Of a stretch of DNA of 64,000 bases, positions 39,066-44,069 are shown piece by piece (position 1 is the first letter of the stretch; the number at the start of each line of letters is the position of its first letter). The stretch is taken from NCBI GenBank assembly GCA_004764695.1, contig SMSO01000036.1:1-64000 (forward strand). The letters run 5' to 3'. The stretch is from Schizochytrium sp. TIO01. Its lineage: Eukaryota; Protista; Bigyra: Labyrinthulomycetes. Under the pieces are notes generated by a model. It did no database searches and was not told the DNA's origin. It saw only the letters and a list, made by a program, of their open reading frames with translations. The position numbers were made by a program, and so were the translations under genes.

Positions 39066-39977
39066 ATGACGCACGACGATGTATCTCCTATTGTCGTCAA
39101 GATCAACCTAGCAAAGACACCAACTGAGCTTTCCGAGCTTTCCCACCATCAAGACGACGCCCACTATAATGGTGAAGGACGCACGATGGACTTTGAAGCA
39201 GCTCGCCGTGCAGACAGCATCATTGAACATAAGAACAATATTTTTCTTCTTGCTTTGGTATGCATCCTCTTTGGGTGCTTTGCCATTGCGCAAATTATCG
39301 CTGCTATTATTGGAAACAGTCTCTCATTGCTAGGCGACTCCTCGAGTATGATTGTTGATGCAGTGACATATGGTCTAAATATGGTTGCTGAAATGATGAA
39401 AAAGCGGGGAGTTTCAGAAATAGTACGCGTTAGACTTGAGTTAGGCATCCCTCTCTTTAGTATGCTTGCACTCATTGCGACTAGTTTATACATCATTGAA
39501 GACGCGGCTGTCACTATTGCAACAGTTGACGAGATTGCCGCGGATGAACAAAATGTTACGAACGATACATTGATGCTTATTTTTAGTTGTATCAACCTAA
39601 GCATTGATATTTTCAGTGTAACTTGTTTTGCTCGTTTCAAGGCTTGCTTAGGCTTTTCAAGTGTAGACATTTTTGTTGACCCCTACAATCTAAACATGGG
39701 TACAAAGAGAAAGGGCAACACAAACATGTGTTCTGCTTATACCCACGTAATAGCGGATACAATGCGAAGTTCTGCAGTTGTTATCGCAGCTATCATTTCG
39801 ATCACGGTGGACACCGTTAACCCCAACCTCGCCGATGCTTGGGCTGCCATTACTGTGTCACTCATCATTTTTATTTCAATGATCCCCCTTGGTCGAGGCC
39901 TCGTTCAAAAATGTATTCAGCTGCGCCATCTCGATCAAGAGAGAAACACAAACAATATTGCAGATATAGAACTCTAG
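39066..39977 (+). CDS. Cation diffusion facilitator (SLC30/ZnT-like) metal transporter (303 aa)
   Basis: About six TM segments. SLSLLGD...M.VD (TM2), NM.SAYTHVIADT (TM5), ADAWAA (TM6). Confidence 0.85.
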   Translation: MTHDDVSPIVVKINLAKTPTELSELSHHQDDAHYNGEGRTMDFEAARRADSIIEHKNNIFLLALVCILFGCFAIAQIIAAIIGNSLSLLGDSSSMIVDAVTYGLNMVAEMMKKRGVSEIVRVRLELGIPLFSMLALIATSLYIIEDAAVTIATVDEIAADEQNVTNDTLMLIFSCINLSIDIFSVTCFARFKACLGFSSVDIFVDPYNLNMGTKRKGNTNMCSAYTHVIADTMRSSAVVIAAIISITVDTVNPNLADAWAAITVSLIIFISMIPLGRGLVQKCIQLRHLDQERNTNNIADIEL

Positions 39978-40422
39978 CTCTGAAGATTTGCCTTGTTGCG
40001 TGTATGACTCTCCTTTTCGAAGATTAAGACTCCTGAAGAAATAATTTTGCGATTGATACTAGAGATGAACAAGCTGCTTTGGTCCTTATTCTTTCCTCAA
40101 TAGAATCATTTCCCAATTGCTAACCCTCCAGCAATTTCAATATCTACGACTATAGTCTCACATCACAACCTTTTGCCCTTATTCGACTTATTCAGCCATT
40201 ATAAAAACATTTTTTTAAAAATATATCATGACATGACGGCAACCTCGTTAATATTCTGCACCGCAGTCTTACACTATAATAATTCGATTAAACTGCTCGG
40301 GTAGTCTAATGACAACTCTTTATCATTGAAGACAATGGGTACACCAAATATCTACAATAAACTAACCTACCTACTATTATTCTTGAATAGTAGTATCTCC
40401 AATACTGTAATATCTGTGAGTG

Positions 40423-41706
40423 ATGCCTCACCACAATGCACACGTCGAGGTGCTGAGTGCCCATGCAAGTTCTGAGCGTGCGCAGAATTTGCTCCGGGAT
40501 GCCTGTGAGGTTCTCCATGCCGAGTGGCCAGCTGGTGGAAGCGTAGATCGTCGCATCCAGCGCCTCTGCGATGCTCAGGACACATGTTGCTTCCTCGGTC
40601 TCATCGTCCAGGCCCAGGATCAACGCGAACACTGCGTTGGTTTTGCTCAACTTCAAGCCGTCACGGACAAAGGTGAAGGGCCAGCCTGTGCCATCACCTC
40701 TGTGGTCACCAGTCCATCTGTGAGAGGTTCTGGCCTTGGCCGCCTGCTCATGAGTGAACTGGAGGTAGAAGCTCGAAAGAGGGACTACGGATATGTCTAT
40801 CTTTGGACATCCACAGCACAAGGCTTTTATGCCAAGTGTGGTTACGAATGCTGTGAAAGCGTAAATCTTTCAAGACCTATTCTAGGCCGGCTTGCGGATA
40901 CTCAGGTGAGTGCGCTCGAGCGCATGCTGCAGAAAATGGGAAGCGATATGTCGAGAAAGAAAAACTCAGCTGGTGCTTCTACTCAAGAAAAAATTGATCA
41001 TGAAGACACCGATGGAGAAAACGTAGTGTGGATGCGGAAGAGGCTGAAGGAGGAAATCCCCGTGCAGTTTCTTGATACACAGGACGTGGACAAACTCACA
41101 CGCGCTGATCTTGTCCACCTAGCACCGCAAGGAACCGCTGTAGATTTCTGCTTGGTTGACGTTCCTTTGTATCGCCAAATTGGGCCATCATGCGGGCTTG
41201 CAGCGCTACGTATGGCCCGACACTTCCTCTGCGGAGAACCGGTGGCACCTGGAGCACCTTCTCTCTTGCAAGAAGCCATTCGCCGAGGCTTCTCGCATGA
41301 TGGTGAACTTTATGATATTGAGGACCTGGCATTGCTGGCGCGTGACGTGAGTGGACTCAACGCCAAGGTTGTCAAAGCCTCAGTCGAAGGATTAAAGTCA
41401 ATCTCCCCTACTCAACTTGTTATTATTCCGTACGATCGTGGTGGAGGTTCTGCACCCGCTTTCCTCGGAGGTAAAGCTGCGCATTATGGACTTGTTGTTG
41501 GTAATGCAACATTCAAAAATATTCGAGATGATACCAGCGTGTCTCGCGTGCTTTCCTTGGAGAAAGATGCATCTTGCGATGCATGTATTGTACAGCATGG
41601 CATGAGCCGGCGCCTGGTCACTGCACTTACACAAGATTGGCTTGCTAGCAATGCTGATCTTACGGCACACAATGGCCTTTGCGGTAAAATGCTTCTTCTA
41701 TCCTGA
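40423..41706 (+). CDS. Fusion of NAA80-like GNAT N-terminal acetyltransferase and ACTMAP (C19orf54)-like cysteine protease (427 aa)
   Basis: N-half: LL.DAC..L..EWP, VG.A.L, ITSVV.SP..RGSGLGRLLM..LE..AR, L.T...GFY.KCGY, VVWMRK. C-half: QIGPSCGLAAL.MA (Cys codon 41191), LL..A..RGF..DGE, IPYD....P...G..AHYG (His codon 41482), QHG.S, SN..L, GLCG..LLL. One uninterrupted ORF. Confidence 0.85.
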   Translation: MPHHNAHVEVLSAHASSERAQNLLRDACEVLHAEWPAGGSVDRRIQRLCDAQDTCCFLGLIVQAQDQREHCVGFAQLQAVTDKGEGPACAITSVVTSPSVRGSGLGRLLMSELEVEARKRDYGYVYLWTSTAQGFYAKCGYECCESVNLSRPILGRLADTQVSALERMLQKMGSDMSRKKNSAGASTQEKIDHEDTDGENVVWMRKRLKEEIPVQFLDTQDVDKLTRADLVHLAPQGTAVDFCLVDVPLYRQIGPSCGLAALRMARHFLCGEPVAPGAPSLLQEAIRRGFSHDGELYDIEDLALLARDVSGLNAKVVKASVEGLKSISPTQLVIIPYDRGGGSAPAFLGGKAAHYGLVVGNATFKNIRDDTSVSRVLSLEKDASCDACIVQHGMSRRLVTALTQDWLASNADLTAHNGLCGKMLLLS

Positions 41707-42002
41707 TTTTATGAACATTAAACTCAAATCGAATGGCATGAAAAACGTAAAAAGATTTTTTAAAAAAGTGATTTGTCTCTTAATGTGTTCTTTGCAAGCG
41801 CTATGCTCTTTCTGAAATAACAAAAGAATTTAGGATGGTTTTTATGTCCTTCTTTAATTTTTATAAAAATAGTAATGACAGGAAATGCCTTTGGACAACC
41901 GTGTGTATTAGTTGACCTTGCATTTTTCAAATTACTGTGTGGCGTCCTCTATATAGGATTTTGATGCGCACAAGTGAAGACTTTGTTAGAGTAAGGTAAG
42001 AT

Positions 42003-44069
42003 TTAATTGACAGAGGTAAAGTAATAAAAGGTTCCCTCAGGAGGAAGATCACAGCCAATAGTTCGAAAAGCTAGCAGAGCGGTATCATCTGAAAATGATC
42101 GCTGGCTACGAAAAGACGCCCCACGGCTGGCTGTACCTGTATCATCCTGTATGCTTGCTGTTGCTCGAGGTGTATGCCGTAGAATTACCTGTCCGCCCTT
42201 TACGATATCCACATGAGACGTCAGCTCTGCCATGAGCTCCACCGTTGTCAGCTGTGTTACCGGAACCATGCTTCCCACATCAGAGGCGGACAAGCATAAT
42301 TCAAAAGACTGTGTTCCTTCGGGCATCACTACTTTCATTTTATACTGGTGGGCATCACTTCCGTGTACGAGGTACAACTCAATTAGAACTGTCTGATTGT
42401 AAATTGCAGCAGAAAATTTGCCGTGAAGCTGTTCGGTAAGGATTTTTTCTGGCCTTGTCAAATCTTCACTTGCCTCCTTCAAAGGTGCTTTGAGACCTCC
42501 GTTACTTCTTGCTGAAGCTTGTCGCTCAATAATCTGTGCAATCTTGTCTGCGGCAGCATTCACCGTAGCCTCAGCTACTGCACGACAATCTTCTGCAGAA
42601 GGTCTCTTGTGGAAAATTTGTGAGTTCGGTGGTGGGGATGGAAGCAAGGTTTCTGTGTGGATTGACGTAGATTTTATTGGGTTCACCTCTGATGTGCTTG
42701 TTGAATTGACTGTCGGTGAAATGCTTTGTTGTTGCACTCTACCCACATGATCCAGAGCGCTTCCCTGCACTTCTGAACTTCCATCATTTTCATCAGCATC
42801 AAAAGTCTTGGAACTGTCCCTTTGAATTTTGGATGGCAGTAATGGTTTTAGCGTCCCACTTGCCTCTTTTGCAGATCTATGTTCAGGATGCGAATTCATA
42901 CTGCTGACATGACTCGAATTACTCTTCAGGCTCGCATTTTTGGAAATGTCAGGAGGATGAAGGCGAATTTCATCCACCTTGGTGTTTTCTGCTGGCGATT
43001 TGTGCTCGTTAACCTCAGCAGCAATCTTTGCTTCCCGGGCTTTTGCCTCGCGAATTTCTTTTAGCTTTTCTTTATTCATAATCATTGAGTCAACGACTGG
43101 GGTAGTTTCAGGTTCTGGAGAGATCACAATAGGCTGCTTTTGACCTAATTTAGAACGCAGAGATAAATTTTTAAAAATCCCGCCTGATGCTTGTTTGGTG
43201 GGCTCTTTGGGCAGTTCTGCCCGAACTGTTCGTAGCTTAGATTTTGTAACAGCAATTGCGTCGTGTGCACGTGTTCGCGGGGAGTTTGTTCCCGGCTTAC
43301 GCCTTGGCATACCTGTTGGGCGTCGAGGGAGCATTGGTTTCTTTTTAACGTTTGTTTTATTTTCCGTGTCCATCTTCACGCGTCGCTTCGGGGGCTTTGC
43401 TGATTGCAACTCGAGAGTTGCCAAGCGCTGCTCAAGGCTAGACAACATATTAATGGCTTTGGTCTCCTGGTTGGCCTCCTCGTTCAGTCGGGTCATGTTC
43501 ACTTCTTCGACAGCAAGGGTGCTTTTAAGAATTTGTTTGCGTTGATATAGCATGTCAAGTACATCGTCCATATGGGCAAAAATTGTCCGTGGCAGAGAAT
43601 TTGCGTTTGAGGCAACCGAAAGTTGCTCACGGACTTCAGACAAAGTAGCGAATAGCAAATTTCGTATGTTAGCTTCTTCATGGAGTTCTTTCTTTGCAAA
43701 GCGATTCTCCTTTCGTAAAAGCTCTGCTTCGATTTCAAGTGAGATTTTTTCCACACGGAGACGAGCAACCTCTTGTTGTAAATCTACAATTGCAGAGGTA
43801 GCTATAGGTTGACTGTTGCGCTCTGTCATTTGTCGCGATAACGCAGGCCTTTGGGGTGTAGCTTCGTTGGCGGTATCCGACTTTCTTCGGCGAGGTGAAC
43901 TGCTTTTGGACTGTACCTTGCTGAGCTGAAGTTTCATACTTTCAACTTCTTCACATAGCCGCTGAACAAGCGCTTGGTCTCCTACGTTCATATACGCCTG
44001 ATCATATTCCTGGTGAACTTGCCGAGGCATTTTTTCTGAAGAGTGTAAACCATTTTCTTCTACCCCCAT
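42003..44069 (-). CDS. Hypothetical coiled-coil, low-complexity protein (688 aa)
   Basis: Long ORF with heptad-like N-terminal segments and a disordered middle. No family recognised. Confidence 0.8.
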   Translation of the reverse strand: MGVEENGLHSSEKMPRQVHQEYDQAYMNVGDQALVQRLCEEVESMKLQLSKVQSKSSSPRRRKSDTANEATPQRPALSRQMTERNSQPIATSAIVDLQQEVARLRVEKISLEIEAELLRKENRFAKKELHEEANIRNLLFATLSEVREQLSVASNANSLPRTIFAHMDDVLDMLYQRKQILKSTLAVEEVNMTRLNEEANQETKAINMLSSLEQRLATLELQSAKPPKRRVKMDTENKTNVKKKPMLPRRPTGMPRRKPGTNSPRTRAHDAIAVTKSKLRTVRAELPKEPTKQASGGIFKNLSLRSKLGQKQPIVISPEPETTPVVDSMIMNKEKLKEIREAKAREAKIAAEVNEHKSPAENTKVDEIRLHPPDISKNASLKSNSSHVSSMNSHPEHRSAKEASGTLKPLLPSKIQRDSSKTFDADENDGSSEVQGSALDHVGRVQQQSISPTVNSTSTSEVNPIKSTSIHTETLLPSPPPNSQIFHKRPSAEDCRAVAEATVNAAADKIAQIIERQASARSNGGLKAPLKEASEDLTRPEKILTEQLHGKFSAAIYNQTVLIELYLVHGSDAHQYKMKVVMPEGTQSFELCLSASDVGSMVPVTQLTTVELMAELTSHVDIVKGGQVILRHTPRATASIQDDTGTASRGASFRSQRSFSDDTALLAFRTIGCDLPPEGTFYYFTSVN

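Follow-up and report, generated by a model that had tools for sequence, protein, structure and literature searches.

Do the two enzymes that mature the N-terminus of actin in animals exist elsewhere as a single protein, and if so, what would such a protein do? The question is raised by a locus of the thraustochytrid Schizochytrium sp. TIO01, located in a stretch of 64,000 nucleotides of contig SMSO01000036.1, hereafter called the window. At positions 40423..41706 of the + strand, an intronless coding sequence of 427 residues plus stop would specify a GNAT acetyltransferase resembling NAA80 joined to a cysteine peptidase resembling ACTMAP. A sequence-only reading of the window had noticed the motifs of both families in one frame and had proposed that the protein couples the two steps of actin maturation. 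This proposal is at variance with reviews in which the clip-and-reacetylate maturation of actin is held to be exclusive to animals (PMC11735805; PMC13557074). The analysis reported here leads us to consider it probable that the locus is an expressed single-gene fusion of an NAA80-type and an ACTMAP-type enzyme, most likely maturing the N-terminus of the conventional actin of the host in two steps. The two catalytic activities on actin, as well as their order, are those that we infer by analogy with the animal enzymes. Both enzymes and the pathway were known already; the fused architecture, its spread outside animals and the proposed mode of substrate capture are new as far as searched.

A single gene joining two enzyme families

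The open reading frame comprises 427 codons from its ATG, with no stop or frameshift inside. An in-frame TGA is found at 40417-40419, just 5′ of the ATG at 40423, so that no 5′ extension is possible without an intron. The uninterrupted frame noticed at first sight is thus real and bounded. When the 64 Mb genome (37 contigs) was scanned, this locus was the only match to the Pfam model PF21646 (73.1 bits) and no second NAA80-like GNAT was found; the gene is therefore single-copy.

Whether one mRNA covers both halves was examined in public sequencing data. The fusion stretch is contained in 22 runs from 11 studies. Among them, 17 small assemblies, presumed to be RNA, carry 75-85% of its sequence words, and genome-scale assemblies carry 94-99%. 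Four of the presumed RNA assemblies, each from a different study, were aligned to positions 39900-42100. Their contigs, of 1607, 1455, 2808 and 2132 nucleotides, span 40424-42030, 40429-41883, 39900-41771 and 40369-41737, respectively, the last after a 201-nucleotide skip upstream of the frame. None has a joint inside the open reading frame and at most single-base differences are seen at the junction of the two halves. The depth of neighbouring contigs differs 10- to 20-fold, as expected of RNA. Moreover, the identical 427-residue protein is recorded in MMETSP (1354-nucleotide contig), which we take to be a transcriptome project, in JGI and in Logan. Both halves are carried on single RNA-like contigs.

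Conservation was evaluated on an alignment of the best 150 (E 5e-58 or better) of 237 hits obtained at E up to 1e-30, when a family profile was searched against 1.84 billion cluster representatives. The N-terminal half of the protein corresponds to residues 1-208. Its GNAT core (residues 1-146, 40423..40860, + strand), made of strands β1-β6 and helices α1-α4, is delineated by PDB sequence search, family profile, Foldseek and Pfam, the GNAT models of which cover residues 46-146 (PF00583 at 6.7e-13). In a phmmer search against PDB chains, Drosophila NAA80 (5wjd) came first, at 3.6e-12 over residues 22-158, followed by human NAA80 (6nas) at 2.2e-8, the next GNAT being at 1.2e-4. The separation widened with a profile of 15 family members, which found fly NAA80 at 1.8e-21, human NAA80 at 7e-21 and the next GNAT at 3.5e-8. 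The AlphaFold2 model of the whole protein (predicted local distance difference test score, pLDDT, 82.4; predicted template modelling score, pTM, 0.76) displays the GNAT topology in this half, and Foldseek placed the five NAA80 entries of the PDB (5wjd, 5wje, 6nas, 6nbe, 6nbw) at ranks 1 to 5, ahead of GCN5 and NatD. The N-terminal half is a GNAT closest, among solved acetyltransferases, to NAA80, both by sequence and by fold.

The residues that define NAA80 were then considered. In the Drosophila enzyme (DmNAA80), W36 and R43 bind Asp2 of the substrate and are indispensable, their alanine mutants being inactive, and S88 and K73 contact Asp3 with an effect on Km (Goris et al., PMC5924903). HMMER alignments place Trp35, Arg44 and Ser93 of the fusion protein opposite W36, R43 and S88. 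The α1-α2 substrate-binding segment thus extends from Trp35 (40525-40527) to Arg44 (40552-40554), at 40525..40554 on the + strand, as aligned to W36 and R43. Trp35 is kept in 126 of the 129 rows filled at that column. Position 44 is more variable (Arg in 78 representatives, Tyr in 39, Lys in 4), as is position 93 (Ser in 86, Tyr in 36). The acetyl-CoA motif R101-G-S-G-L-G106 (RxxGxG; 40723..40740, + strand), recognised from the sequence and the PDB alignment, contains G106, present in all 141 filled rows, and G104, present in 130. The last GNAT strand, defined by the structure model and by conservation (residues 200-208, 41020..41046, + strand), includes the motif VVWMRKRL (residues 201-208), of which W203 is found in 136 of the 150 rows, K206 in 140 and R207 in 143. 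In the model, a strand at residues 202-207 is followed by a helix at 219-233. Since only about 10 residues separate the last GNAT strand from the protease domain, there is no long or flexible linker between the two halves.

The C-terminal half contains an ACTMAP-like cysteine peptidase domain (residues 215-427, 41065..41703, + strand), indicated by Pfam, by a domain model and by fold matches. PF21646 (ACTMAP-like_C) matches residues 250-360 at E 2.3e-19, with 70.4 bits for a cut-off of 27 and positions 4-119 of the 121 of the model. No other peptidase family appeared in the Pfam scan of the fusion protein at E up to 1. A separate model of this half (pLDDT 93.6, pTM 0.91) shows a papain/C39-like peptidase fold. 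The nearest solved folds include the C39 domain of ComA and a primitive phytochelatin synthase. With Foldseek, the closest ones, among them PCAT1 (1.2e-4) and 3erv, were found at E of about 1e-4. With VIA-align, C39/papain-like matches span Z 8-14, for instance PeiR (14.4), Alr0975 (14.3), 3erv (13.5) and UfSP1/2 (about 11). Sequence and fold searches of the PDB gave no solved ACTMAP structure, in agreement with the literature, where human ACTMAP, the nucleophile of which is C132, is known only from AlphaFold models resembling bacterial cysteine proteases (PMC13367750).

Conservation delimits the putative active site. The motif Q252-I-G-P-S-C257 (41176..41193, + strand) would bring the oxyanion-hole glutamine and the nucleophilic cysteine, and the segment from Y337-D338 to A353-H354 (41434..41484, + strand) a conserved aspartate and the catalytic histidine. 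Gln252 and Cys257 each occur in 149 of the 150 rows, Asp338 in 142 of 145 filled rows and His354 in 143 of 144. Cys257 would be the counterpart of human C132, the correspondence being drawn through the Pfam model rather than from a direct alignment. The catalytic residues pointed out in the sequence-only reading, a cysteine at 41191 and a histidine at 41482, are indeed Cys257 (41191-41193) and His354 (41482-41484). Likewise, the motifs that it had attributed to the two enzymes are genuine, and the best matches of the halves are to the NAA80 and ACTMAP families rather than to unrelated GNAT or C39-like families. Judged from sequence, its proposal of a fusion of both enzyme families with catalytic residues kept is supported.

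Distribution and subtypes of the fusion

In 127 of the 150 representatives, each half is covered over 70% or more of its length, so that the fusion is carried by no fewer than 127 clusters (50% identity). The labels giving the source organism are sparse among cluster representatives. A homologue with 57% identity is found in another thraustochytrid, Hondaea fermentalgiana, under the names 'UPF0692 protein C19orf54-like' (NCBI) and 'Actin maturation protease' (UniRef). Other labelled sources are diatoms (Nitzschia and a Bacillariaceae metagenome-assembled genome), diplonemids (Diplonema papillatum and Flectonema neradi), the choanoflagellate Savillea parva and the dinoflagellate Polykrikos kofoidii. 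The latter two are represented by one transcriptome entry each, and these records could be contaminants. The fusion is clearly widespread among marine protists. Four entries that looked like standalone ACTMAP-like genes (P0124, P0147, P0154 and P0018) were discarded: in all of them the sequence sets in with the last GNAT strand (DVWLRKRL), hence they are truncated fusions rather than separate genes. Finally, word-index searches gave no match for the N-terminal half and two proteins only for the C-terminal half, in an index too limited for this to be evidence of absence.

Two subtypes can be distinguished by the substrate-binding positions. The first, with Arg44 and Ser93 (71 rows), includes the present gene and the diplonemids. 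The second, with Tyr44 and Tyr or Phe93 (39 rows), includes the diatoms and the choanoflagellate record and often has an arginine after Trp-Pro (WPR; column of residue 37). In a third of the family, the arginine by which NAA80 anchors its substrate is thus replaced; the protein of Schizochytrium sp. TIO01 is of the Arg/Ser type, as in animal NAA80.

The gene tree calculated with FastTree is poorly resolved. Thraustochytrids are positioned near diplonemids, and the choanoflagellate sequence groups with diatoms. Gene tree and species tree thus disagree, and vertical descent is not claimed. An ancestral origin, a spread by gene transfer and the existence of two old paralogous types are candidate histories. 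Of the earlier suggestion that the pathway is older and wider than assumed, the second part is supported and extended, with at least 127 clusters and five protist groups (thraustochytrids, diatoms, diplonemids, a dinoflagellate and a choanoflagellate), and an ancient origin of the fusion is a candidate reading as far as the gene tree goes.

Actin as the presumed substrate

If the fusion protein acts on actin, the actin of the same organism should be considered first. Five actin loci give identical full-length matches (487.8 bits each) with open frames of 384 residues. They are located on contigs C36 (63614-64732), C31 (7107315-7108433), C30 (5328134-5329252 and 1633472-1634590) and C8 (31573-32691), and are designated L001 to L005 in this order. 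They would be either a multi-copy identical gene or copies lying in repeats such as chromosome ends. The N-terminus of the one actin frame that was read is MADDEVQALVIDNGSG, opening with MADDEV. Such a start, in which one small residue precedes several acidic ones, is class-II-like and agrees with the animal scheme without proving it.

The part of the protein that may recognise actin is an insert of 53 residues preceding the last GNAT strand, between β6 and β7 of the structure model (residues 147-199, 40861..41019, + strand). At the same position, human NAA80 has an insert that is unique among human N-terminal acetyltransferases (NATs), proline-rich and able to bind profilin (Rebowski et al., PMC7141826). 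As the sequence-only reading had remarked, no polyproline occurs in residues 147-199 of the fusion. When the protein is modelled on its own, the insert is of low confidence, with pLDDT below 50 at residues 147-177 and 183-199. Conservation and the model of a complex with actin nevertheless delineate in it an amphipathic segment (residues 149-176, 40867..40950, + strand), with conserved positions L154, L157, V162, L165, E166, L/M168 (here M168), L169 and R/K171-172 (here K171). Out of 147 rows, L165 is found in 129 and E166 in 130; L157 is found in 110 of 146. Separately, one homologue (P0006, 535 residues, on a 1.56 Mb ENA contig) has an N-terminal extension of about 85 residues with a run of five prolines (PLPPPPPLL). 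This extension could be a profilin-binding element within a fusion protein or could result from a mis-predicted start.

The complex of the fusion protein with its own actin was predicted with ESMFold2, in three runs and with three controls. The interface score ipSAE, which is the model's own confidence, was 0.81 in all three runs and 0.00 at best in the controls; for comparison, 51 of 78 solved complexes and 2 of 108 mismatched pairs attain the same mark. At least 96% of the contacts are shared between the runs, and the pLDDT of the partner is at least 88. In the predicted complex, residues 1-6 of actin lie against Trp35, residues 91-95 and residues 127-130 of the GNAT site. The tightest contacts join residues 148-170 of the insert to actin residues 144-149, 168-169, 345-356 and 373-376, those of lowest error falling on 144-149 and 345-353. 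The insert residues that touch actin in the model are those conserved across the family. After a +1 offset from alpha-actin numbering, the surface contacted in the model is the hydrophobic cleft that separates subdomains 1 and 3. This cleft, at the barbed end of actin, is the binding site of profilin, WH2 motifs and gelsolin. A conserved amphipathic helix of the insert is thus predicted to dock directly in the actin cleft, a new and testable prediction. In this respect, the earlier remark that substrate capture may differ from that of human NAA80 gains support from the complex model.

Considering these elements, the following mechanism may be envisaged. By analogy with animal class II actins, a methionine aminopeptidase would remove Met1 of actin and NatA would acetylate Ala2. 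The ACTMAP domain, with Gln252, Cys257 and His354, would then clip the acetyl-Ala. Finally, the NAA80 domain, with Trp35, Arg44, Ser93 and the RGSGLG motif, would acetylate the exposed Asp3. Actin would be captured directly, and not via profilin, by the helix of residues 149-176 bound in the subdomain 1/3 cleft, and the docked helix would keep actin in place as the actin N-terminal tail moves to the active sites. The presence of both halves in 127 of the 150 representatives argues for selection on this architecture.

Several points weigh against this scheme. On the acetyltransferase side, K73 of DmNAA80 corresponds to Gln78 in the fusion, a position that is not lysine in human NAA80 either, and S124, which contacts residue 1 of the substrate, corresponds to Trp128. 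On the protease side, it is through the Pfam model that the C-terminal half is placed in the ACTMAP family. The protease half also makes no actin contact in the predicted pose, which is no evidence against an action of the protease on actin. The GNAT-actin part of the predicted complex may partly reproduce what the model had learned from solved NAA80-actin-profilin structures. That the Logan runs derive from RNA is a guess. As for the substrate, plant actins start similarly, yet plants are without both ACTMAP and NAA80 (PMC13557074); the MADDE start could stay Ac-Ala-Asp in the thraustochytrid, as it does in plants.

Alternative explanations have to be weighed against a dedicated actin maturation enzyme. 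The one that survives best, with a small but real chance, is that both domains are active on substrates broader than, or other than, actin, the family likeness reflecting common descent only. According to PMC5924903, NatB-type peptides are substrates of DmNAA80 in vitro and NatB substrates are acetylated by NAA80 expressed in yeast, so that the narrow range of NAA80 in cells would be partly contextual. The altered contact with substrate position 1 (Trp128) and the 39 cluster representatives having Tyr in place of the Asp-binding Arg would go in the same direction. However, the protein studied here belongs to the Arg/Ser type of animal NAA80. The high score predicted with its own actin as compared to the controls, together with a conserved helix predicted to dock on an actin-specific surface, also disfavours a generalist enzyme.

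Slightly less probable is a division in which one half alone acts on actin, the other being a structural or docking module or serving a different step, for instance a protease trimming something else. That the GNAT half alone touches actin in the predicted complex would agree with such a division. The active sites of both halves are, however, near-invariant (C257, H354, G106 and W35) in 150 diverged representatives, which argues for two working enzymes.

It is improbable that the protein is a relative of the bacterial fusions of a GNAT with a C39 peptidase (PF00583 + PF11814), perhaps acquired by gene transfer and unrelated to actin. According to language-model features, the nearest clusters of the ESM Atlas are indeed such bacterial fusions, with scores of 0.92-0.93; but 134-143 of 256 features are shared, a level rated as distant or chance. 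In addition, the protein has no match to PF11814, PF13529 or PF03412 at E up to 1, as compared to 70 bits for PF21646. No relative came up when bacterial and archaeal genomes were searched with the pattern of the family, tblastn against plasmids yielded weak generic GNAT matches only, none of them on the peptidase half, and PF21646 matches none of 14 control bacterial genomes. The weakest idea, that two adjacent genes were merged by an assembly or reading error, has nothing in its favour and is refuted by the unbroken frame, by contigs of four independent runs that cross the junction with at most single-base differences, by the identical protein in MMETSP, JGI and Logan and by the junction itself (VWMRKRL into the protease), kept in 127 full-length representatives.

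The surroundings of the gene may be briefly described. Upstream, 39066-39977 (+ strand) encodes a cation-efflux family protein (PF01545, 2.9e-15). Downstream, a convergent open reading frame of 688 residues (42003-44069, - strand) has no Pfam match; this frame and the longest RNA-like contig of the fusion gene, which extends to 42030, overlap at their 3′ ends. In the spacer that separates the fusion gene from the cation-efflux gene, 5′ of the fusion frame, an RNA-like contig of run X6 skips 201 nucleotides at positions 40168-40370 of the window. The only canonical reading of this junction is CT..AC on the + strand, that is, GT..AG on the minus strand, so that the spacer may be crossed by a spliced antisense or read-through transcript. 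In run X3 this region is present unspliced, and two other RNA-like contigs begin at positions 40424 and 40429, where the fusion frame opens.

Meaning and comparison with known systems

No description of an NAA80-ACTMAP fusion was found in the literature searched, which does not include Haahr et al. 2022 or the Drazic et al. 2018 supplement; the sequence-only reading, which knew of none, agrees with this. Its statement that NAA80 is described mainly from animals has to be corrected, as orthologues have already been reported in some Amoebozoa, including Dictyostelium (Drazic et al. 2018, PMC5924898). Furthermore, a Paulinella actin peptide acetylated at Glu3 led Meinnel and Giglione to infer the presence of NatH in Cercozoa.

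The occurrence of the fusion in protists challenges the animal-exclusive view of actin maturation and likely moves the origin of the pathway well before animals. A fusion of this kind also predicts a functional link between the genes that are separate elsewhere, and a one-protein version conserved in many protist lineages gives comparative support to the two enzymes as one pathway. It is tempting to go further and to consider the fusion, with its docking helix and its occurrence in stramenopiles, an alveolate, diplonemids and a choanoflagellate, as the ancestral eukaryotic machinery of actin N-terminal maturation, an idea that we regard as possible but doubtful. If it were true, the separate animal genes would have arisen by fission, each half then gaining a profilin-dependent capture. 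In that case, actin N-terminal maturation would date from early eukaryotes and would have disappeared from plants and fungi, instead of being an animal invention. Whatever its history, the fusion would offer a compact system for studying the coupling of two steps on one substrate. Thraustochytrids can be grown and genetically modified; the predictions made above are therefore directly testable.

Among known architectures, the bacterial GNAT and C39-like fusions (PF00583 + PF11814/DUF3335, Pseudomonadota) have the same domain order in 370-410 residues. No sequence-level link with the present fusion was detected by HMMER, tblastn or pattern scans, and they are treated as a putatively analogous architecture. 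In the ESM Atlas clusters, these bacterial fusions are abundant and mostly come from Pseudomonadota. The C39 domains of PCAT1 and ComA and the C39-like 3erv resemble the C-terminal half with Foldseek E of 1.2e-4 to 6e-4 and VIA-align Z of 12-13.5. The likeness to the peptidases of C39 bacteriocin transporters is of fold only, at 10-21% identity, and these enzymes cleave double-glycine leaders and are not aminopeptidases of acetylated residues.

Human ACTMAP is 351 residues long. ACTMAP (C19orf54) and the C-terminal half of the fusion have in common the full-length PF21646 match, the papain/C39-like fold and the Gln-Cys-His set. They differ in that ACTMAP is encoded by a separate gene in animals, whereas in the fusion about 10 residues separate the domain from the last GNAT strand. 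The fusion also lacks the N-terminal region of the human protein.

With NAA80/NatH, the fusion shares the GNAT fold, the RxxGxG motif, the essential Trp and Arg, the β-bulge Ser and, as in human NAA80, a long insert before the last β-strand. It differs by its junction to a protease and by having no long N-terminal extension. A proline-rich insert may not define the whole NAA80 family, because the 159-residue Drosophila chain of the PDB would be too short to hold an insert of about 70 residues. In human NAA80, the insert is proline-rich and recruits profilin, whereas in the fusion it carries a conserved helix for which direct docking in the actin cleft is predicted. Thus, the same position of the GNAT fold would serve two modes of actin recognition, one through profilin and the other through actin itself.

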